From the sequence record NC_027399.1: a stretch of DNA of 64,000 nt. One strand, given 5' to 3'. The notes beneath the pieces are model-generated. The model was not told the origin of the DNA. It did not search any database and was given only the letters and a program-made list of their open reading frames with translations. The translations under genes were made by a program, and so were the position numbers. Positions 30,409 to 57,814 of this stretch are shown here, one piece after another; within the stretch, counting starts at the first letter, position 1; the number at the start of each line of letters is the position of its first letter.

Positions 30409-33400
30409 ATGTATATTGATGCATATATGGAACGAAAACGTAGTGGTGATGTGTTGCATGTAGTAGAACGAAAAAATGGAAAGCGTATTCTACGAGAATT
30501 ACAACCACTATATGAGTATTATGTAGAAAATGTTAATGGTAATCACAAAACCATTTATGGTACTAAAGCAGAAAAACTGGAATTCGATACTGCATCTGAA
30601 CTAAAACGAAGTATAGAAAAAAATGTAGCAAATGGAATCAGAACATTTGAAGGTAAATTCAATGTTGTATTCAAAACACTTGCTCAATATTATATGGGTA
30701 CTGAATCACCAGATTTAAACATTGTATTCTTCGATATAGAAACTGATTTTCATAAGAAATTTGGTTATGCATCTCCATCTAATCCCTTTAATCGTGTAAC
30801 AGCCATTTCATTATATCAGTCATGGACAGGTAAAGATTATGTACTTACCCTTGCTCCAGAAGATATGACAACAACAGAAGCACAGGATATTGTCAATAAA
30901 CTAAATGCGGAAACTAATGATCCAAATTCAAGTGTAATTCTTTATACTGATGAAAAGGAAATGTTCATGGATTTCTTTAGTCTAATTGATGATAGTGATG
31001 TATTATCTGGATGGAATAGTGAATTTTTTGATATTCCTTACATGATTAACAGAACCAAAATTATCTTCAATGAAGCCATGACTGCTCGTTGGTGTTTATG
31101 GAATAAAAAACCAATTGCACGTGAAGCGGATAACTTTGGTAAATTGGTACAGACTTATGATTTGGTTGGTCGAGTTCATCTTGATTATCTTGCTCTTTAT
31201 AAGAAACACGCTGCTCAGGTAGAGCAATCGTATAAACTTGATTATATCGCAGAAAAAATCACAAAAGAAAATAAAGTACAGTACGAAGGATCTCTGGATA
31301 AATTATATAGAGAAGATTATATGACTTTCCTTCGATATTCTAAACAGGATAGCATTCTTCTCAAAAAAATCGATTCTATTCTTGACTATATTAGTCTGCA
31401 TAACCGACTTGCACATAAAGAATGTGTTCTCATCAAAACTACTATGGGTTCAGTAGCACTGATTGACACTTCAATTATCAATCTAGCACACAAACGTGGT
31501 GAAGTGGTATTTGATAAAAAAGAAGAGGTTGAAATTGATCCAGAACTTGAGTACTATGATGGATACGATGATGATGAAGACAATAATGATTCAAAACTCA
31601 GTGCAAAAGCAGCAGGTGCATGGGTACAAGACCCAATATTAGGATTAGTTGAATACTTGGGTTGTACTGACTTTAACTCACTTTACCCAACTGTACTTCG
31701 AACTCTAGGAATGAGTACTGAATGTATTCTTGGGCAAATTAGACAAGATTATACAGAAAAATACTTAGAAGAACGTATATCTGAACAAAAAGCAAAGTCT
31801 AAATCAAAATCATTTGAACCGGAGTGGACAGCAGCATGGCATGGTTTATTCGCCGCCGTGGAGTTTACGATGGTACATGAAAGAAGTGAAAAACTACTGA
31901 CTATTGATTTAGAAGATGGTAGTTCTTTCCAGGCAACGGGTTCACAGTTATATGATATTATATTCAGTCCAGAAAGTACTATTGTACTTAGTGCAAATGG
32001 AACACTATTTGATAAATCAAAATATGGTGTTATTCCAGATATCCTAACGCAATGGTATTCTGAGCGTAAAGCCCAGCAAAAAATGGTAATTGATTATAAA
32101 CATATGGCTTCAGATGGTTGGGAAATTCCATCACCTGATATTGTTCAAAATATGTTTTCACAATTCAGTACTAAATCATACTATAAAACAAACCTTCATG
32201 AAGAAGATCCAGTATATCTTCTACGTAAAGCTATAGGTGATAATAATCTTGAAGAAATTTCTCGTCTTATTGTAGAAAATAATTTAGTACTAAAAGATGG
32301 ACGTATTTTTTGTTCAGATGAGGATAAAAAATATTTCAAACAACAAAGTGCTTTCTGGAAACAAAACCAACAAATTCGTAAAATTCTTCTAAACAGTCTT
32401 TATGGTGCACTATTGAACAAAGGAAGTACTTTCTTTGATAAACGACTTGGACAATCAGTAACACTAACTGGCCGCTCAATGACAAAACACATGGCAAGTC
32501 GCATTAATGAAATTACTACTGGGGTTTATAATCACACTGGTGGTAGTGTTATATATGGTGATACCGATTCTGTGTACTTCAGCGTTGTTCATTATTTAAA
32601 AGAACAAAACATTCCATGTGATCTAAGTAAAGAAGAGATTGTGGATATGTATATAAAAATTGGCGATGAAGTGGGTGAATCTTTTCCTGAATTTATGGAC
32701 AAAATGTTCAATACTGGAATTGAAAAAGGTAAAATTGTAGGTGCTGATCTGGAAATGGTTGGCTCCCGAGGGCTGTTCCTTAAAAAGAAACGTTATGCTA
32801 TACTGAAATATTGGGAAGATGGGTTCCGTAAAGATGTTGATGGTAAACCTGGTGAAATCAAAGCAATGGGGCTTGAGATTAAGCGTTCAGATACACCAAA
32901 ATACATCCAGAACTTCCTTGAAGAGACTTTAATGGCATTACTGGTAGGGGAGTCCGAGAGTGAATTAAAACAGCGTGTACGTGATTTTAAGGCGGTATTT
33001 AAGGACAAACCAGCACACGAAAAGGGTTCGCCTAGAACAGTGAAAAATTATTCAAACCTTGAAGCTGATTTTAAAAATACTGGTAAATGTCATGTAGGTC
33101 ACGTCCTCGCTGGTATTCAATGGAATATGTTACGCAATGCATATGATGATAAAACTGTGCCAGAAGTTACTGATGGTACTAAAGTGATTGTATGTGATTT
33201 GAAACCAAATCCACTTGGAATTACTAAAATTGGTTATCCAATTGATTGTGTTGAGTACTTACCTGAGTGGTTCCTTGAATTACCGTTCGATACAGATAAA
33301 ATGGAAGAAATTATCTTAACTAAAAAACTGGATAATATCTTTGGTATTCTTGATATGGATATTGGTATTCATGAAAAAAGTACTGCACAGGATTTTGGAT

Positions 33401-33411
33401 TTTTCTCGTAA
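30409..33411 (+). CDS. gp43: Family B DNA polymerase, gp43-like
   Basis: ExoI FFDIETD, ExoII GWNSEFFDIPY, motif A DFNSLYPT, motif B KILLNSLYG, motif C YGDTDS, KKRYA. Confidence 0.97.
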   Translation: MYIDAYMERKRSGDVLHVVERKNGKRILRELQPLYEYYVENVNGNHKTIYGTKAEKLEFDTASELKRSIEKNVANGIRTFEGKFNVVFKTLAQYYMGTESPDLNIVFFDIETDFHKKFGYASPSNPFNRVTAISLYQSWTGKDYVLTLAPEDMTTTEAQDIVNKLNAETNDPNSSVILYTDEKEMFMDFFSLIDDSDVLSGWNSEFFDIPYMINRTKIIFNEAMTARWCLWNKKPIAREADNFGKLVQTYDLVGRVHLDYLALYKKHAAQVEQSYKLDYIAEKITKENKVQYEGSLDKLYREDYMTFLRYSKQDSILLKKIDSILDYISLHNRLAHKECVLIKTTMGSVALIDTSIINLAHKRGEVVFDKKEEVEIDPELEYYDGYDDDEDNNDSKLSAKAAGAWVQDPILGLVEYLGCTDFNSLYPTVLRTLGMSTECILGQIRQDYTEKYLEERISEQKAKSKSKSFEPEWTAAWHGLFAAVEFTMVHERSEKLLTIDLEDGSSFQATGSQLYDIIFSPESTIVLSANGTLFDKSKYGVIPDILTQWYSERKAQQKMVIDYKHMASDGWEIPSPDIVQNMFSQFSTKSYYKTNLHEEDPVYLLRKAIGDNNLEEISRLIVENNLVLKDGRIFCSDEDKKYFKQQSAFWKQNQQIRKILLNSLYGALLNKGSTFFDKRLGQSVTLTGRSMTKHMASRINEITTGVYNHTGGSVIYGDTDSVYFSVVHYLKEQNIPCDLSKEEIVDMYIKIGDEVGESFPEFMDKMFNTGIEKGKIVGADLEMVGSRGLFLKKKRYAILKYWEDGFRKDVDGKPGEIKAMGLEIKRSDTPKYIQNFLEETLMALLVGESESELKQRVRDFKAVFKDKPAHEKGSPRTVKNYSNLEADFKNTGKCHVGHVLAGIQWNMLRNAYDDKTVPEVTDGTKVIVCDLKPNPLGITKIGYPIDCVEYLPEWFLELPFDTDKMEEIILTKKLDNIFGILDMDIGIHEKSTAQDFGFFS

Positions 33412-47859: not shown

Positions 47860-48681
47860 ATGACAAATAAACTTGAAGAATTTGTGAATTCTATTGCAGT
47901 ACTGGATACTGAAACCAATGGTATTCTTGAAACCGATGAAATTATAGAATTTAGTATTTCATTTCCAGAATCATTGAATGATTCTATTGATAATATTATG
48001 AATTACACCAATCGTTATAAACCACAAAAAGAAGTGCCAGCTATAGCAAGTTCAGTTCATTTTATTACAAATGAAGATTTGGAAAGTTGTGGAACTTATG
48101 ATTCTGAATTACCAACAATTGATGCATTAATGGGAAGTCGTCAATATTATGTTGGTCACAATGTACAGTTTGATCGTAGAATGATGCGTCAATGTGAAGA
48201 TAAATATCGCAGTGAACCTTCTCAATATCTATATAAAGATAATTGGATTTGCACTTTACGATTAGCCAAAAAACTTCATGCAGAAGATTCTGATTACGAT
48301 AATATGACTCTAAGTTACTTATGGTTTAAACTTGGGTGTTATAAGGGGCATCGTAAAGTAGAAGCACATAGTGCACGTGATGATGTTTTTATGTGTTACT
48401 CGGTGCTAATTAAATTAGTTGAAGAATGCATTTCACTTGGAATCATTGATCCAAATAATGACATTGGATCTCAAATTATTCAGTACTGTAATACTCCTAT
48501 TATCTATGAAAAAGTAACATTTGGTAAACACAAAGGAATGGATTTTTCTGAATTACCAATGGACTACCTTATGTGGATGATTACAAATAGTGACATTTTA
48601 AATACTGACAAAGAAGATTGTGATATGGATTTGGTGGCAACTTTTGAGTACGAATATAACAGAAGGACAAACGCCAATTAA
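47860..48681 (+). CDS. DEDDh 3'-5' exonuclease (ExoX-like)
   Basis: VLDTETNG, VGHNVQFD, HSARDDV; C-terminal TFGKHKG...LP.DYL.W domain. Confidence 0.85.
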   Translation: MTNKLEEFVNSIAVLDTETNGILETDEIIEFSISFPESLNDSIDNIMNYTNRYKPQKEVPAIASSVHFITNEDLESCGTYDSELPTIDALMGSRQYYVGHNVQFDRRMMRQCEDKYRSEPSQYLYKDNWICTLRLAKKLHAEDSDYDNMTLSYLWFKLGCYKGHRKVEAHSARDDVFMCYSVLIKLVEECISLGIIDPNNDIGSQIIQYCNTPIIYEKVTFGKHKGMDFSELPMDYLMWMITNSDILNTDKEDCDMDLVATFEYEYNRRTNAN

Positions 48682-48698
48682 TAACAAGGAAGATATAA

Positions 48699-50234
48699 AT
48701 GGAAATACCAAAAGTAGGAACAGGAACGTTCAGACCAAAGGCCAAAAAAGGTACTTCGTGCAAATTGATTATTCAAGATGAGGTTAATTGTAAGTTCGAA
48801 GGGTTAGATCCTTCCTTGCGTTCATTATTGATAAAAGAAGTATCATATATTTTACCATATGCGAAATTCACTCCAGCAGGTAGACTTGGCCGCTGGAATG
48901 GTGAAGTGAATTTTATGAATATGGGTGGTGGTACATATTTACATATGCTTGATAAACTTCTTCCAATATTAGATGAGTACGAAGTACAAATTGAATTAGA
49001 AGATCATAGGATTGATTATGGTTTTCAATTCGATCCGATTGATGAGAATATTTTCAGTGATGTAGTATTTCCAATTGGGCATCACATGGAAGGTAAAAGT
49101 ATTATTCTTCGTGAACATCAAGTAAACTCAGTAAATGCATGTTTAGCAAATCCACATGGATTATTATTAGCAGCAACTGGAGCCGGAAAGACAATTATCT
49201 GTGCAGCGTTAGCTCGTTCAGTACAGAAATACGGTCGTTCAGTAATTGTTGTCCCTAGTACTGATTTAGTTCAACAGACATATAATGATTATGTTATGAT
49301 GGGACTTGATACTGGGATGTTTTGTGGTGCTCAAAAGGATTTCGGTCATCAACATACTATTACTACATGGCAATCATTTAACTCCTTGTGGAAAAAAACC
49401 AAGAAGGGTGAAATAGAATTAACAGAGCAAGATGTTCATGATTTTATTGATGGTGTTGTTTGTGTTATTGTTGATGAAGTACAAACAGCCAGAGGTGATG
49501 CATTATCTAATCTATTATCAAAAGTAATGCAGAATGTTCCTTTGCGTTGGGGTTTAACTGGAACAATTCCAAAAGATCAAATTGAAGCAGCCAGAATTAA
49601 ATGCAATCTTGGCAATGTGATTTATACTGTTACATCAAAAGAATTACAAGATAAAAAGATACTAAGCACGTGTAACATTAGTTGTATAAAATTAAAAAGT
49701 TCAATGAAGTTTGAGAATTATGCCGAAGAATTAAAATTTCTAACAACTGATAGAGAAAGAATGTCATATGTTGCTAAGCTTATTCAAGCATTATCTGAAT
49801 CAGGTAATACATTAGTATTGGTTGATAGAATTGAATGTGGTAATCTTTTATGTGAATTTTTAGGTTTACCAAAATCAGAATTTGTTAAAGGTGACACAAA
49901 GAAAAAAGATCGTGAATCTTCTTATGGTGAAATTCGCTGGGCTGATAATAAAATTTTAATTGCTACATATGGGGTTGCTAGTACAGGCATAAGTATTTCA
50001 CGACTCTATAACGTAGTTCTTATAGAACCTGGAAAAAGTTTCATTAAGACAATTCAAAGTATAGGACGTGGATTACGCGTTGCCGAAGACAAAGACCATG
50101 TTGAAATCATTGATATCAGTAGTTCAACAAAATACAGTGCAAAACATCTCAGAGAGCGTTTGGTTTATTACAAGGAAGCAAAATATCCACATAATGTCAT
50201 AGAAGTAAAAGACTGGCAAAATCTCTCAGACTAA
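48699..50234 (+). CDS. uvsW: SF2 DNA helicase UvsW
   Basis: LREHQ, AATGAGKT, VDEVQ, GLTGT, QSIGRGLR. Confidence 0.92.
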   Translation: MEIPKVGTGTFRPKAKKGTSCKLIIQDEVNCKFEGLDPSLRSLLIKEVSYILPYAKFTPAGRLGRWNGEVNFMNMGGGTYLHMLDKLLPILDEYEVQIELEDHRIDYGFQFDPIDENIFSDVVFPIGHHMEGKSIILREHQVNSVNACLANPHGLLLAATGAGKTIICAALARSVQKYGRSVIVVPSTDLVQQTYNDYVMMGLDTGMFCGAQKDFGHQHTITTWQSFNSLWKKTKKGEIELTEQDVHDFIDGVVCVIVDEVQTARGDALSNLLSKVMQNVPLRWGLTGTIPKDQIEAARIKCNLGNVIYTVTSKELQDKKILSTCNISCIKLKSSMKFENYAEELKFLTTDRERMSYVAKLIQALSESGNTLVLVDRIECGNLLCEFLGLPKSEFVKGDTKKKDRESSYGEIRWADNKILIATYGVASTGISISRLYNVVLIEPGKSFIKTIQSIGRGLRVAEDKDHVEIIDISSSTKYSAKHLRERLVYYKEAKYPHNVIEVKDWQNLSD

Positions 50235-50733: not shown

Positions 50734-51230
50734 TGAATATTTTAACACCAGAAAATAACGCATTTGATATGGATTTGGTATCAGATTTAATTCCCGAAGA
50801 AATGTATTGCGTACTGGATTTAAGTCCAGGTGGAGATAGTGATTTTTATTTTCGTCATATCCTCAATACTATTACATTCAACAGCAACAGTGCTGATATT
50901 CAAATTGGTAATAAAGTACTACAAGTGCCTCTCAACTGGCAAATTATGTTAGGTGACGAAGACACTGGAATGGTAGAAATGTGTACTATTGAAAACATTC
51001 TTAATATGAAAGAACCAAAAGCATATGTTTTCAATCCAATTCGTTCTATGTATCCACGTTTTGAACCAGTTAAAGTACTAAGAGCATTTACTCTACCTAC
51101 TAAATGGCAAATTCCAATTGTACCAAAAAAGAATTTGCTATGTGTTCCATTACAACACGGTTCTAATCCACCTTGCGTATATTTCGCAGATGAAAATGAG
51201 AAAATTCAGGATTTACATTTGGGGCTATAA
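50730..51230 (+). CDS. Conserved hypothetical beta-rich protein
   Basis: 166 aa, coupled to both neighbours; MNILTPEN..FD.D and QVPLNWQIMLGD motifs. Confidence 0.65.
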   Translation: MMNILTPENNAFDMDLVSDLIPEEMYCVLDLSPGGDSDFYFRHILNTITFNSNSADIQIGNKVLQVPLNWQIMLGDEDTGMVEMCTIENILNMKEPKAYVFNPIRSMYPRFEPVKVLRAFTLPTKWQIPIVPKKNLLCVPLQHGSNPPCVYFADENEKIQDLHLGL

Positions 51231-52027
51231 TGTCTGATAAAAAAGAATTACAAATTCAGGATGTATTACATCATATTGATATTGCAGATTATAAGTACTA
51301 TGATACACTTAGTGACGAAGAAAAGAAAAGTTTCACGCCATATACTGTTTTGAGATGGGTAAGTGCGTTGGACGATTCGTTATTGGTTACTTACAATGCA
51401 AAAGAGATTGAAAATGTATTCGGTAAATGGAAGAATGGTGGCAAAGAAGCATTGAACGAGCTTGTATTGGAACTCCAGAAAGATGGAGTTGGTGTTTTGA
51501 ATGTATCAAAATATTGCCACACTGAACCTTATGACTGGAGAATCAAATTTTCAGTTAAAGATAAAAAATCGAGTGAAAAATTGATTTCAACACTTAAAGA
51601 TTTTAGAATTAACTCATCTGAGATTCTTCAACTGGAAAATAGTGATGTACTAAAATATCAATTAATCTTTTTAAATGATATGGTTAATGATGGATTTTGG
51701 GAAATGAAAGACCACCCTGATTTGGTGTATCAATTGATGTGTTCAGTTCAGGATATGGTTGGTGCTGAACCTAAAGTACATAACTGGATCCCGTTTACTA
51801 AAGGTTTGAAGAATGTTAGTACTGAATTATTCAATATCATTAAACAAACCCAACCCGAATTAACACGAGAAAATATAAACGAGCTTGAATATAAAATTCT
51901 CCTTTTATCTTACTCTAAAGAATCTTTTAAAGAACTACTTGATGATTTTGGATATCAGGAGAGTGAAGTTAAAAAATTGTTAAAAACATTTAAAGAAGAA
52001 TGTTCGAAATATGGCAAAGAGATCTAG
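51230..52027 (+). CDS. Possible clamp-loader small subunit (gp62-like)
   Basis: N-terminal YYDTLSDEEKKSFTPYTVLRWVS resembles gp62-like proteins of large myophages (recalled). Confidence 0.4.
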   Translation: MSDKKELQIQDVLHHIDIADYKYYDTLSDEEKKSFTPYTVLRWVSALDDSLLVTYNAKEIENVFGKWKNGGKEALNELVLELQKDGVGVLNVSKYCHTEPYDWRIKFSVKDKKSSEKLISTLKDFRINSSEILQLENSDVLKYQLIFLNDMVNDGFWEMKDHPDLVYQLMCSVQDMVGAEPKVHNWIPFTKGLKNVSTELFNIIKQTQPELTRENINELEYKILLLSYSKESFKELLDDFGYQESEVKKLLKTFKEECSKYGKEI

Positions 52028-52757
52028 TACAGGGGTAAGAAAAACCCCTATAAAGAAAATTAAAAAAGAAGAATATGTATGTTATTTCTGTGATAAAAAA
52101 TTTAAAAGAGAAAATACTATACTAACGCATAAATGTATTAAACGTGACCGATATAATGATCGAGAAAGTCGTTTAATGAGAGAAGCATTAAGAATATATC
52201 TTTTGTTTATGAAAATAAATCATTTACCACTAAAGAAAGATGTTGAACCACTAATGTATTTTATCAAATCTTTGTATTTTAATGACTTCTATGATTTCGC
52301 TAATTACATTCTAAATAATGATATACTTGAAAAAGAAAGATTTTTGAATCACATTATGACTAGTGGTATGTCAGTGCAGAAATGGACTACCCATGCAGTA
52401 CTTGAAGAGTGGGTTCTTCATGTATTAAAATACGAACATCCAGAACGTGGTGTAGAACGTTCTATTATGGCAATAGTCGAATGGTCTGAATTGACGTCAA
52501 ACGAATGGACTACCTTTTTTGATAATGTTTCTCCTGCTCGTTTTATTGCATGGGTAGAAAGTGGTAAAATATCTCCATGGTTATTATGGACTGTTCCACC
52601 GGAAGTGCTTAGAAAAATAACAGACCGACTTAGTGATTCTGAGCTTGAATATATAGTCAAATATATTGATCCTACTTATTATCAAATAAAAAGTATAAAT
52701 CCTTATCAAGTATCAGTGCAAAAATTAAAAACTATATTACAAGATTCGGGATTTTAA
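52011..52757 (+). CDS. C2H2/C2HC zinc-finger-containing hypothetical protein
   Basis: YVCYFCDKKFKRENTILTHKC at the N-terminus; GKISPW motif. Confidence 0.6.
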   Translation: MAKRSSTGVRKTPIKKIKKEEYVCYFCDKKFKRENTILTHKCIKRDRYNDRESRLMREALRIYLLFMKINHLPLKKDVEPLMYFIKSLYFNDFYDFANYILNNDILEKERFLNHIMTSGMSVQKWTTHAVLEEWVLHVLKYEHPERGVERSIMAIVEWSELTSNEWTTFFDNVSPARFIAWVESGKISPWLLWTVPPEVLRKITDRLSDSELEYIVKYIDPTYYQIKSINPYQVSVQKLKTILQDSGF

Positions 52758-52760
52758 AAT

Positions 52761-53126
52761 ATGAGTATATATAAACAAACGATCAATGAAGGTAAAATTG
52801 ATAATCTCTATCACAGAAATGTAACTAAACCAGAAGTACAGAGTATTAAAAAATCATCTGAACTTAAATTGCTCAGAAGTGGAAGTGTAACTGAAATAAC
52901 ACTGGATGATAAAACATTTCAGGTTTATGATGCACATAAGATTCATAATATTATTACGTTCGTTGAACGACATGAAGATAGTATATTCAATTTAAGACAA
53001 GATAATAATAATCTTAAAAAACAAATACAAATACTATCAAAGAATATTCAAACATTACAAAGTACTGTTACAAAATTACAGGAACAATTAAAAAATGCAG
53101 GATTCAGTTCAAACAACTACTTATAA
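52761..53126 (+). CDS. Coiled-coil hypothetical protein
   Basis: Heptad-rich C-terminal half. Confidence 0.6.
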   Translation: MSIYKQTINEGKIDNLYHRNVTKPEVQSIKKSSELKLLRSGSVTEITLDDKTFQVYDAHKIHNIITFVERHEDSIFNLRQDNNNLKKQIQILSKNIQTLQSTVTKLQEQLKNAGFSSNNYL

Positions 53127-53736
53127 AAAAGCAAGAACCGACATTGACATTGATGTAAAAGATGCAAAAGAAGTAATAAGTATTCTTCCTTGTACAAGGA
53201 GTACTGAAAAAATTAATGAAAGTGGGTTAATCGTTCATAATAGTGGAGTTCATTTTGATAATATTCCTGTTGATCCTGTTACTGGGTATAGTAGTATTGA
53301 ATATAAAAAAGCCGAACAATTAGGGTATCAAAAAGTTGATATCCTTTCTAATTCGGCTTATAAGTACGTGAGAGACCGAGAACATTTAATTGAACTCGTT
53401 AATAAAGAACCACAATGGGATTTATTGCTGATACCAGAAATAGTAGAAGAATTGTCACATATTAAAAAACACATTTCACTTCTTAATGTATGGAAACCAC
53501 AAAGCATAGATGAACTGGCAATGTTTATTGCCATGATTCGTCCGGGGAAATACAAATGCCAAAGTATGAATTCATGGGATGAAGTACGTAAAGAAATATG
53601 GGATTACAGTACAGTACCAGTGCAGGCAGATGGTAAAAAGGTAATGTATTTCAAAAAACCACATGCTTACGCGTATAGTTTTATGATTGTGGTGCAATTG
53701 AACGCATTAGTTGAACACATTATGTCCTCTTCTTGA
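53095..53736 (+). CDS. Miniature DnaE/Pol III alpha-like (C-family) catalytic core
   Basis: TDIDID, HNSG, GYQKVDIL, IRPG and FKKPHAYAY appear in DnaE order within 213 aa. Confidence 0.8.
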   Translation: MQDSVQTTTYKKARTDIDIDVKDAKEVISILPCTRSTEKINESGLIVHNSGVHFDNIPVDPVTGYSSIEYKKAEQLGYQKVDILSNSAYKYVRDREHLIELVNKEPQWDLLLIPEIVEELSHIKKHISLLNVWKPQSIDELAMFIAMIRPGKYKCQSMNSWDEVRKEIWDYSTVPVQADGKKVMYFKKPHAYAYSFMIVVQLNALVEHIMSSS

Positions 53737-54076
53737 GGGCAACATTTCTTCGTTTAATTCGTTTTTGCGGTAAATCGCTTAAAGATGTTTGTGGCCCACT
53801 GATGAATTTAATTTGTGGTGTATCGAAACGTTTAGTATAGTTTTCAAATTTTTCCATTTCTTCCTGGAAAAATAAACATACTGGAATAAGTCTATTACTC
53901 TGAAACCACCAGTCCTCTGCTAACTGGAGTATTTCCTCTCTTTCTTTTTTAGACATAAGATCCAAGCAATAGAGTGTTGTGTATTTGGTACTCTTTATTT
54001 TAATTATCCCAATGTAGGTATTTTCGTTGTGGTCGAGTACTGTAATGTATTCGGGAAATGCTTGGTATTGATTCAT
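53720..54076 (-). CDS. Hypothetical protein
   Basis: 118 aa; GGAAG RBS; TATAAATA on the minus strand at 54115-54122. Confidence 0.7.
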   Translation of the reverse strand: MNQYQAFPEYITVLDHNENTYIGIIKIKSTKYTTLYCLDLMSKKEREEILQLAEDWWFQSNRLIPVCLFFQEEMEKFENYTKRFDTPQIKFISGPQTSLSDLPQKRIKRRNVALKKRT

Positions 54077-55172: not shown

Positions 55173-56231
55173 ATGAATCAAGTTCAAAATATAGTATCTC
55201 AAATTTTTAAAGACCCGGTGCCAGCGATAAACCAGTGGAAAAGACATAACTGTCCTGCTTGTGTTTTTCGTGGTCAGGGTCGCCCAGATACAAGAGGACG
55301 TGGAAATCATATGTTCAATGCTGATGGTGGTATTGCATATAACTGCTTTAACTGTCATTTAAAAGTTTCATGGGTTCCTGGTTTATATATGAGCAAAGAT
55401 TTTAAATCTTTGCTTTCTTATTTTGGGGCTGATGAAAAAAGTATTACATATTTAGATCTCTTCGTTAAAGAAATGGTCAATAATGAAGAATATAAAAAAG
55501 AAACACCATCCTCTAAACTATTTCAAAATTTACAAACAAGATCGTTGCCAGAGAATGCAAAAACATTTATAGAATGGGCTAATACTGAACAACCACCAAA
55601 GGAATTCATTTCAGTACTAAATTCCGTAAATTCAAGAAATCCATATATTCTGGATTTGGACTTATACTGGAGTCCATCTAAAGAGCATCAATTATATAAT
55701 CGATTTATTATACCTTATTATATGAATAATAAAATAATTGGTTATACTGCTCGTCATAAAGAACACAATCCCACCAAGTCATTGCGATATATAAACCAAG
55801 TCAGTACTAATATTTTATATAATTATGATTTATTAAATGATAACAGAATTAAAACGATTTTAGTTACCGAAGGACCAATTGATGCCGCATTGATGGGTGG
55901 TGTAAGTGCAAACAACTATTTTTTAACTTCTCCACAGATTGAATTATTAAAAGCAGCACAGGAACGTGGTAAGAAAATAGTCATTGTACCTGACAGGGAT
56001 AAAAATGGATTGGAAGCAGTAAATCAGGCAATTGATAATGGGTTTAGTGTTTCATTACCAAATTTTGGAACTATTAAAGATCCAACCAAATTCGGACACA
56101 GACCAATAAAAGACTTCGATGAAGCATGTGTTATATATGGAAGAATATTTTGTTTACAATTAATACACGATTCAATACTAGATACTGAATTTTCAATCAA
56201 AACAAGAATTGCAAATTCATGGGATATATAA
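55173..56231 (+). CDS. gp61: DNA primase, gp61-like
   Basis: Zn ribbon CPAC...NCFNC, RFIIPY, GYTAR, TOPRIM VTEGPIDA and PDRD. Confidence 0.88.
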   Translation: MNQVQNIVSQIFKDPVPAINQWKRHNCPACVFRGQGRPDTRGRGNHMFNADGGIAYNCFNCHLKVSWVPGLYMSKDFKSLLSYFGADEKSITYLDLFVKEMVNNEEYKKETPSSKLFQNLQTRSLPENAKTFIEWANTEQPPKEFISVLNSVNSRNPYILDLDLYWSPSKEHQLYNRFIIPYYMNNKIIGYTARHKEHNPTKSLRYINQVSTNILYNYDLLNDNRIKTILVTEGPIDAALMGGVSANNYFLTSPQIELLKAAQERGKKIVIVPDRDKNGLEAVNQAIDNGFSVSLPNFGTIKDPTKFGHRPIKDFDEACVIYGRIFCLQLIHDSILDTEFSIKTRIANSWDI

Positions 56232-56245
56232 AATAAAGGAATATA

Positions 56246-57814
56246 ATGAACAAATCAATCACACCGGACGTGACTCAATATAGTATTAAAAATCAAGAAT
56301 ATCTTCTTTCTCAAATTTTTACAAATCCAGATTTGTATGTACGTTGTAAAAATATCTTAAAACCTGAATATTTTGATAAGATATTTCAAAACAGTATTCA
56401 GTACGTTCATGAATACAGTAATAAGTACAACGGTGGTTTCCCAACTCTACTTGATATTGAAGTTAAAAGTGGATTTCAATACACTGAAATTAAAGTATCT
56501 GAATTAAACAAACAAGCTGTATTAGATCATTGCGGTGAATTTTGTCGTCACAAAGCACTAGCACTTGCAGTTGAAAAGGGAATGGAATTAGTTCAACAAA
56601 AAAAATATGGTGGTATTGAAGAATTAATCCGTGAAGCCATGCTTGTTACTGTACAAAATGAATTAGGTCTTGATGTATATGAAAACCCAGAGGAAACAAT
56701 CCAGTCACTTAAAGATATGCAGGGTTCGATGCGAAGTGGATGGGATACTCTTGATTTCAAATTATTTGGTGGTTTTGGTAAACAAGAACTTGAAATATTC
56801 GCGGCGGCAAGTGGTGGTGGTAAATCGGTTGTACTACAAAATATCGCAGTTAACTTTTCCAAAATGGGATTAAATGGTGCATATATTTCACTGGAACTTG
56901 CAGAAGAACTGGTTGCGGTTCGTATCTATGGTATGATGACTGATACTAAACTGAGTACAATCAAAAGCGATGCAAGTAACATTGGTATGAAAATCGCCAT
57001 TGATGGTAAACAGTCTGGTTCACTGAGGATTAAGCGTTTACCAGAATCGATTACAACTTCTAATGATATCGAAAGTTACATTCGAGAATTACAAATAAAA
57101 ACTGGGATTAAACTGGATTATATTTGTGTGGACTACTTAGACTTGATGACCTCGGAACGTAGTACTGATGCATCAAACGTGTTTGTTAAGGATAAATTTG
57201 TATCAGAAGAATTACGTGCCTTAGCACATACTATGGACATGACTGTATTCACAGCCGCACAGTTTAACCGTAGTGGTATTAATGAAGAAAAGAAAAGTCA
57301 GGCACAAATTGCAGGTGGCATGTCAAAGATTTATACTGCTGATAACGTAATTTATATCGAAACTAATAAAGATAAAGGTGAACTTTGGTTTGACTTCCAG
57401 AAAACTCGTAACAGTTCTGCTGTAGGTTCAAAACTTCGCATGTCTTATAATATGGACTCTCTTCGAGTACTGGATCATGCACAAACAATTCAGGAGCTTG
57501 AGTGTAATAAGAGTGGTTTTAAGCTCACACAGAGCACTATGGGTGTTGGTGGAGGCTCAGTGACACAACCACCTTCGACTATGACAAGTCTTCGCCACAG
57601 CCTTTACAATGCAAATATGGGGCTATCTCAACCAGTTGAAGTTGAACACAATGTAGACAACACAAGTGTACTAAATACTGACAATGAGGATGTTTTAAAT
57701 TCACCAGCGTATGAAAATGAAACAATTGAAGAATTTGAAATTGTAGAATCGGTGCAGACAAAACTTTCTCCAAGTAAAATTAGTAATATGAGAGACTTTT
57801 TAGGGAAGAGATAG
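56246..57814 (+). CDS. gp41: Replicative helicase, gp41/DnaB-like
   Basis: AASGGGKS, ISLEL, CVDYLDLM, TAAQFNR, KTRNS. Confidence 0.92.
   Translation: MNKSITPDVTQYSIKNQEYLLSQIFTNPDLYVRCKNILKPEYFDKIFQNSIQYVHEYSNKYNGGFPTLLDIEVKSGFQYTEIKVSELNKQAVLDHCGEFCRHKALALAVEKGMELVQQKKYGGIEELIREAMLVTVQNELGLDVYENPEETIQSLKDMQGSMRSGWDTLDFKLFGGFGKQELEIFAAASGGGKSVVLQNIAVNFSKMGLNGAYISLELAEELVAVRIYGMMTDTKLSTIKSDASNIGMKIAIDGKQSGSLRIKRLPESITTSNDIESYIRELQIKTGIKLDYICVDYLDLMTSERSTDASNVFVKDKFVSEELRALAHTMDMTVFTAAQFNRSGINEEKKSQAQIAGGMSKIYTADNVIYIETNKDKGELWFDFQKTRNSSAVGSKLRMSYNMDSLRVLDHAQTIQELECNKSGFKLTQSTMGVGGGSVTQPPSTMTSLRHSLYNANMGLSQPVEVEHNVDNTSVLNTDNEDVLNSPAYENETIEEFEIVESVQTKLSPSKISNMRDFLGKR

Follow-up and report, generated by a model that had tools for sequence, protein, structure and literature searches.

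Why does a phage with a complete B-family replisome also encode a small protein that carries the catalytic motifs of a bacterial replicase? The question is raised by gp158 of Klebsiella phage K64-1 (AB897757 / NC_027399), a jumbo myovirus in the RaK2 group with 346.6 kb of DNA; the 4.3 kb surrounding the gene match this phage at 100% identity. The gene lies in the 64-kb stretch of DNA analyzed here, which we call the window; a window position equals the genome position minus 62000, and coordinates are window positions unless marked otherwise.

53095..53736, plus strand: gp158 (ACQ27_gp158; RaK2 ORF124), 213 amino acids (aa), ATG to TGA; genome 115095-115736.

RefSeq labels the product 'DNA polymerase', and the protein is a full-length match to phrog_11778, also 'DNA polymerase' (E 5.9e-104). 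A preliminary description of the window had recognized five DnaE-like motifs in this open reading frame (ORF) and had proposed that the protein acts as a stand-alone nucleotidyltransferase. We conclude that gp158 is a genuine, selected, miniaturized piece of a C-family (DnaE-type) polymerase with intact catalytic aspartates. With high confidence, we assign it as one subunit of a split enzyme whose other subunit is gp204, and the two proteins probably work together as a deoxynucleoside triphosphate (dNTP) polymerase in the replication module of the phage.

Read from N to C terminus, gp158 contains TDIDID (residues 15-20), HNSG (48-51), GYQKVDIL (77-84), IRPG (148-151) and FKKPHAYAY (186-194). 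Numbered against E. coli dnaE from MG1655, the key residues of these motifs have the following equivalents.

53140..53154, plus strand: codons of D16-I-D18-I-D20; D16 and D18 correspond to the catalytic D401 and D403 of E. coli DnaE, and D20 to D405.
53236..53247, plus strand: H48-N-S-G51, corresponding to H511-A-G-G514, which in DnaE form the palm strand after the thumb.
53332..53340, plus strand: K80-V-D82, corresponding to DnaE K553-F-D555; D82 is the third catalytic aspartate.
53539..53547, plus strand: R149-P-G151, corresponding to the DnaE fingers motif R639-P-G641.
53650..53676, plus strand: F186-K-K-P-H190-A-Y-A-Y194, corresponding to DnaE F756-N-K-S-H760...Y764; H190 corresponds to the steric-gate histidine.

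The motifs are present in the order that had been described, and their key residues do not vary in the family. Across 26 sequences that share 41-76% identity, D16, D18, D20, H48, G51, K80, D82, R149, P150, K152, F186, K187, H190 and Y194 are all invariant, a set that includes the three catalytic aspartates. The residue equivalent to DnaE position 405 is conserved as aspartate in the DnaE groups and is an asparagine in PolC (PMC3919608); the aspartate at this position of gp158 (D20) therefore marks the protein as DnaE-type rather than PolC-type. For the histidine equivalent to H190, DnaE H760, a role as steric gate against ribonucleotides has been proposed, and it does not vary among Pol III alpha enzymes (PMC8485763).

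Relatives of gp158 of about equal size, hereafter C-halves, occur in 96 phage records. A word-indexed search returned 335 C-half protein clusters, and an exhaustive profile search yielded 559 representatives at 50% identity, with both length and ends kept. The ratio of nonsynonymous to synonymous substitutions (dN/dS) between genera is 0.05-0.11, with dS saturated, and the closest relatives of gp158 differ only at synonymous sites or by one whole codon. Conservation of length and ends together with the low dN/dS confirms that this is not a broken gene, as had been argued from its clean stop, and on these grounds we rejected the reading of gp158 as a pseudogene or fragment.

For the C-half alone, the sequence evidence of a relationship to DnaE is marginal, and a search of PDB sequences with the single gp158 sequence returned unrelated proteins as its top matches. 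The relationship is settled by the predicted structure. The AlphaFold model of gp158 has a predicted local distance difference test (pLDDT) score of 93, and Pol III alpha accounts for each of its top 10 Foldseek matches in the PDB (probability 1.0, E 2e-3). Significance was also reached with a joint profile, built from a trimmed alignment of natural fusions and both halves of the enzyme: searched against the PDB, it matched Pol III alpha only (E 1.7e-9), and the alignment runs unbroken across the junction between the halves, over residues 319-418 of E. coli alpha (2hnh). The fold search and this joint profile, which is built around the natural fusions, were the sole routes by which homology of the C-half became significant.

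What gp158 lacks is as informative as what it contains. The protein starts 15 residues before the DxD strand and therefore has neither the GRGS motif that binds triphosphate nor the rest of the palm's first part; many C-half homologues begin straight at M-DIDID. No ORF resembling the missing N-terminal half was found within the window (best hmmsearch E 1.3). A search of phage proteins with the N-terminal 190 residues of P0178, one of the natural fusions described below, identified it elsewhere in the genome.

Genome 148806-149324, plus strand: gp204, 172 aa, outside the window at a distance of 33 kb downstream of gp158.

Like the C-half, gp204 has its own phage protein family (full-length match to phrog_11127), and it passes Pfam PF07733, the Pol III alpha NTPase domain, with 35.1 bits against a gathering cut-off of 23.9. 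The PF07733 match reaches the very last residues of gp204, where the GRGS motif is formed by G139-R-G-S142 and where the end of the protein, ...GLGRGSS...DVNEFLKY, corresponds to DnaE 361-394 (GRGS...ERFLNP). The first 93 residues are a family-specific extension with no match to PHP. The split point thus falls at about DnaE residue 394: gp204 stops there, and gp158 begins just before the equivalent of D401. It is uniform throughout the family, N-halves ending in ...EFLK/R and C-halves starting 0-18 residues before DIDID, from Klebsiella jumbo phages to marine contigs.

The two halves are inherited together. N-halves were found in 93 phage records and C-halves in 96, with matching genus counts (Escherichia 34/34, Pseudomonas 11/11, Salmonella 8/8 and Erwinia 8/8). 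The gap is made up of two Alishewanella phages and one 109-kb Klebsiella record marked UNVERIFIED, and in one of the former, Alishewanella phage Slicko01, a hidden Markov model (HMM) search recovered the N-half (E 3e-16), 11 kb from the C-half. The halves are always distant genes, separated by 11 to 182 kb; between the Slicko01 value and the maximum, found in Atu_ph07, lie XacN1 (15 kb), K64-1 (33 kb), PA5oct (44 kb) and SCTP-2 (116 kb). We found no N-half adjoining the C-half in Slicko01, where it lies at the 11-kb distance just given, or on metagenomic contig L019, where a gene like gp156 of K64-1 occupies the upstream position. Identity to the K64-1 proteins tracks between the N-half and the C-half (PBECO4 82.6/75.5%, GAP32 77.9/76.0%, SE_PL 76.2/75.7%).

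Among the 150 C-half representatives listed of the 559, all but two are separate genes with their own start and stop. The two exceptions, P0178 (375 aa) and P0263 (336 aa), are metagenomic natural fusions in which the GRGS region precedes the gp158-like part, the order found in DnaE, and both ORFs are intact on their contigs. P0178 scores 59.6 bits on PF07733. Its model is a single confident body (pLDDT 88.8, predicted template-modelling score 0.87), all 18 of its 18 Foldseek matches at E <= 1e-3 are C-family polymerases (DnaE and PolC), with the next match at E 1.8, and VIA-align superimposes 333 of the 375 residues on M. tuberculosis DnaE1 with a Z-score of 21.6. Over positions 356-462 of 1190, the phrog_405 profile is matched by both the N-half and the fused form. 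A maximum-likelihood tree built from 119 C-half sequences places the two fusions in separate well-supported clades, each as sister to a short split form, which indicates that fusion has occurred at least twice. A composite Pol-beta-like active site is divided here between two proteins that are conserved, co-inherited and occasionally fused.

Together, gp204 and gp158 comprise about 385 residues in two chains, compared with 1160 aa in the single chain of E. coli alpha. gp158 spans the equivalents of DnaE residues ~395-785, namely the second part of the palm and much reduced fingers. The thumb (approximately DnaE 436-509, about 75 residues) is replaced by a turn of 2-3 residues between the gp158 strands 34-41 and 44-53. 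The fingers have about 128 residues, compared with about 350 in DnaE, and the stretch from RPG to FNKSH has 37 instead of 117. The chain ends one helix past the steric-gate motif, at about DnaE 785. The PHP domain, thumb, (HhH)2, clamp-binding motif, OB and tau-binding domain are missing from both chains. The preliminary description was right that PHP, clamp-binding, OB and most finger regions are gone; it overlooked the loss of the thumb and of the first third of the palm with its GS motif. In cellular C-family enzymes, PHP and (HhH)2 are nearly universal, as reported by Timinskas et al. (PMC3919608).

This pair is an already known system. In 2021, Iyer, Anantharaman, Krishnan, Burroughs and Aravind (Viruses 13:63) described, from comparative genomics, a "minimal, split Pol III alpha" in group 2.2 jumbo phages (PMC7824862). 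It is made of two proteins from distant genes, an N-terminal one that binds NTP and a C-terminal one that binds Mg2+ and template. It is found together with a family B polymerase in phages of the RaK2-like, PA5oct, Atu_ph07, XacN1 and SCTP-2 types, and the authors suggest that the two polymerases may act jointly to synthesize or repair strands; no separate PHP or HhH genes were reported, and the split form is argued to resemble an ancestral form (PMC7824862). gp204 and gp158 differ from this system in nothing essential. K64-1 also displays the other hallmarks of the group: its halves lie 33 kb apart on the same strand, and it encodes a T4-type B-family polymerase (PolB), a DnaG primase, a DnaB helicase and an RFC-like clamp loader. 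The statement that similar short proteins in related phages have no assigned function is therefore outdated. The present analysis adds the exact position of the junction on the DnaE sequence, a map of corresponding residues, steric gate included, support from AlphaFold and fold searches, two independent natural fusions, occurrence outside jumbo phages and synteny with the primase gene.

Existing annotations are mixed. Several GenBank records label one or both halves Pol III alpha, and the Atu_ph07 paper lists a 'DNA polymerase III alpha subunit' as conserved in RaK2-like phages. In JN882285, MT939487, KU574722, MK773491 and MT708547, the C-half is labelled 'putative membrane protein' on account of one predicted transmembrane helix. 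This helix is the long C-terminal one, the equivalent of the steric-gate helix of DnaE, and the membrane label is almost certainly wrong.

We compared the pair to two kinds of single-chain relatives. With bacterial DnaE1 and E. coli Pol III alpha (PDB 2hnh and 5fkv; Taq 2hpi and 3e0d; M. tuberculosis 5lew), gp204 and gp158 share the Pol-beta-like palm and GRGS, and gp158 shares the equivalents of D401, D403, D405, D555, K553, RPG and FNKSH...Y. In contrast, DnaE1 has about 1160 residues in one chain, and the phage pair has about 385 in two, without PHP, thumb, (HhH)2, beta-clamp motif, OB or tau-binding regions. The second relative is the full-length phage DnaE of jumbo group 3.2 (phrog_405), whose profile the N-half and the fused form match. 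That enzyme is host-like, single-chain, equipped with PHP and the sole replicase of its phages (PMC7824862), whereas gp204 and gp158 are accessory to PolB.

The genes around gp158 place it in a replication cluster.

30409..33411, plus strand: gp131, T4-type B-family DNA polymerase, 1000 aa (DNA_pol_B_exo1 E 1.8e-21; DNA_pol_B E 1.9e-21).
52011..52757, plus strand: gp156, 248 aa, N-terminal CxxC...H zinc-finger-like motif, phrog_11058 (function unknown).
52761..53126, plus strand: gp157, coiled-coil protein of 121 aa, annotated as virion structural; the last 32 nucleotides (nt) of the gene overlap the start of gp158.
53720..54076, minus strand: convergent 118-aa ORF, phrog_11637 (function unknown; E 6.6e-53), overlapping the last 17 nt of gp158.
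55173..56231, plus strand: gp161, DnaG-type primase, 1.4 kb downstream of gp158.
56246..57814, plus strand: gp162, DnaB-type replicative helicase.

With both exonuclease and polymerase Pfam domains, gp131 bears out the full B-family replicase that had been noted alongside gp158; carrying its own 3'-5' exonuclease domain, it is the main replicase of the phage. gp158 closes a co-directional gene run that opens with a DEAD-box (UvsW-like) helicase at 48699-50234. Of the two neighbours that had been described as coupled to gp158, gp157 lies upstream on the same strand and overlaps it, and an overlap of 20-35 nt is kept in RaK2, PBECO4, GAP32 and SE_PL. The downstream ORF is on the minus strand and convergent, and therefore is not translationally coupled to gp158. 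This convergent gene and its 3' overlap are kept and annotated in the same four phages; in RefSeq NC_027399 it is unannotated, and a 21-aa 'gp159' is listed instead at genome 116058-116123. A terminator-like hairpin is present at 53723-53741. The partner gene gp204 also lies near a replication gene, the RFC-like clamp loader gp208, which is four genes downstream and about 1.1 kb from the end of gp204.

The position of the C-half relative to the primase gene is conserved: it lies 1.4-1.5 kb upstream in K64-1, in Slicko01 and on marine TARA contigs. The order shared by these genomes is helicase, zinc-finger protein and C-half, followed by a convergent small ORF, one gene, primase and helicase. 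The convergent ORFs of K64-1 and Slicko01 have no detectable similarity to each other, so that position alone is conserved in this case. A gp156-like protein recurs just upstream of the C-half in Slicko01 (L005 1970-2590; weak, E 0.009) and on contig L019 (2-583), where it directly precedes the C-half P0177. A gp156-type protein could work together with the mini-polymerase or with the primase.

The halves also occur outside jumbo phages, as in the 141-kb Slicko01 and, in fused form, on an 8-kb contig that carries a Rep gene.

L015 1516-4181, 8-kb JGI metagenome contig: fused P0263 and Rep gene, translationally coupled.

Here P0263 overlaps by 4 nt the end of the gene for a 552-aa PF03090 Rep protein (50.7 bits) with a helix-turn-helix (HTH). 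The PF03090 family includes priming Rep proteins, and the contig may be a very small replicon that encodes both a primase-type initiator and a mini-polymerase of its own.

Several other features of the cluster were recorded. A separate DnaQ/RNase T-type 3'-5' exonuclease is encoded at 47860-48681 on the plus strand (PF00929, E 7e-12). As PolB has its own exonuclease domain, this protein might proofread for the mini-Pol III. In E. coli, epsilon binds the PHP domain of the polymerase, and the absence of PHP from the mini-Pol III counts against such a role. A 265-aa ORF at 51230-52027 (plus strand) matches phrog_11758 over its full length (residues 1-264 against profile positions 1-263), which suggests that the RefSeq start of gp155 (genome 113368, 219 aa, 138 nt later) is probably too far downstream. 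The N terminus of this ORF resembles a protein encoded after the Slicko01 clamp loader (E 6e-6), and it could be a gp62-like clamp-loader partner. In Slicko01, the 'DNA polymerase' is annotated as two adjacent genes (L006 2491-4194 and 4194-5129), and the main polymerase of that phage may also be split. In K64-1, a hef-like homing endonuclease gene divides the topoisomerase II gene, as annotated, into two pieces (genome 141021-146123; L003 1-3306), and further homing-endonuclease genes or fragments follow the helicase within the window (genome 120095-120673 and 123097-124830).

How might the split enzyme work? gp204 would contribute the initial portion of the Pol-beta-like palm, with GRGS to bind the triphosphate, and gp158 would supply the strand with the metal-binding D16 and D18, the D82 strand with K80 before it, and cut-down fingers with RPG and the FxKxH...Y helix. 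The two chains would join non-covalently into one active site, and the heterodimer would add dNTPs, selected over ribonucleotides, to a primer on a DNA template. Templated DNA polymerase activity of the pair is the outcome we slightly favour. Low processivity is expected from the absence of the thumb, HhH and clamp contacts. The most likely role would be to extend primers made by the DnaG-type primase, or to fill gaps, before or beside the T4-type B-family replicase. In Bacillus-type Firmicutes, DnaE3 extends primase primers before handing them off to the main replicase, and eukaryotic Pol alpha is likewise a second polymerase of this kind. A hand-off of this type would fit the position of the C-half beside the primase, as a functional analogy only. 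The involvement of the nearby primase that had been suggested for gp158 is thus plausible and receives some support from the conserved synteny.

Several points weigh against this proposal. By itself, gp158 has no match to PF07733 in Pfam, and its score for the Pol III finger domain PF17657 is below threshold (14.4 bits against a cut-off of 22; E 0.024). The C-half profile reaches a best E of 0.12 against PDB sequences, which is not significant, its sole match being M. tuberculosis DnaE1 in four collinear pieces that are the gp158 motifs, and hhalign gives a probability of 3.4% for the C-half against the single E. coli DnaE. A literature search found no biochemical, genetic or proteomic study of the activity or complex of gp204 and gp158, and the PA5oct omics, CRISPRi-ART and RaK2 genome papers contain no data on either half. 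The assembly of the two chains is inferred from the natural fusions only, and the link to the primase from gene order only. Without a thumb, (HhH)2 and most of the fingers, a weak grip on the duplex is expected, and templated synthesis is therefore not assured. Finally, a full B-family replisome is already present, and the need for a second polymerase is unexplained; T4-type PolB enzymes extend RNA primers themselves. A bolder version, in which the pair and its rare fusions form an active templated polymerase of ~340-385 residues, by far the smallest in the C family, dedicated to a primase as its partner in primer extension or gap filling and distributed beyond jumbo phages, is a tentative idea that we consider rather doubtful.

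The alternative that survives best retains an active gp204-gp158 enzyme and dispenses with the template: the pair would be a terminal transferase, an (oligo)nucleotide signal synthase, or an enzyme that modifies DNA ends or primers. The loss of the thumb, (HhH)2, the clamp-binding motif and about two thirds of the fingers is compatible with this, as is the complete B-family replisome of the phage, and use of the Pol-beta-like fold is widespread among transferases that need no template (PMC11646218). However, the family keeps the motifs that in the DnaE fingers face the incoming dNTP, among them the histidine of the steric gate, which is invariant and selects deoxyribose; each of the two genes is located in a replication module, one with the primase and helicase and the other with the clamp loader; and the fused form is coupled to a Rep/primase gene. 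We consider a non-templated enzyme unlikely.

Much less probable still is the stand-alone nucleotidyltransferase of the preliminary description, in which gp158 would be active and self-sufficient. The protein has a confident predicted fold (pLDDT 93), keeps all three catalytic aspartates and, apart from the two fusions among the 150 representatives listed, is encoded as a gene of its own. It nevertheless has neither a GS motif for triphosphate binding nor the first element of the palm, both of which to our knowledge belong to every Pol-beta-like nucleotidyltransferase, and many of its homologues begin at M-DIDID. The missing piece is kept as a separate gene in the same genomes and has been fused to the C-half twice independently. 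In K64-1, it is gp204, at a distance of 33 kb, that carries the NTP-binding element. A split DnaE with its remaining part at another genomic locus is the finding that the preliminary description had itself named as refuting its idea, and the stand-alone proposal is set aside.

Least probable of all is that gp158 is a decaying remnant or pseudo-enzyme, left over from a phage DnaE that was once full-length and retained in a structural or regulatory capacity: most DnaE domains are indeed gone and the similarity of the C-half to DnaE is marginal by sequence, but length and ends are conserved in the 559 representatives, the catalytic residues are invariant, omega is 0.05-0.11 with close relatives differing at synonymous sites or by whole codons, and one split point is shared from Klebsiella jumbo phages to marine contigs.

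The split C-family polymerase has consequences for annotation and for the biology of these phages. gp158 is properly annotated as "Pol III alpha-like polymerase, C-terminal subunit", paired with gp204, and not as a stand-alone enzyme or a membrane protein. Should the pair prove active, it would set the minimal catalytic unit for a bacterial-type replicative polymerase, built from two small chains that form one active site, and would offer a compact enzyme for structural and engineering work. A minimal split enzyme also bears on the origin of the C-family polymerases, and it invites one to ask what phages that already have a complete T4-type replisome gain by keeping another polymerase beside their primase.

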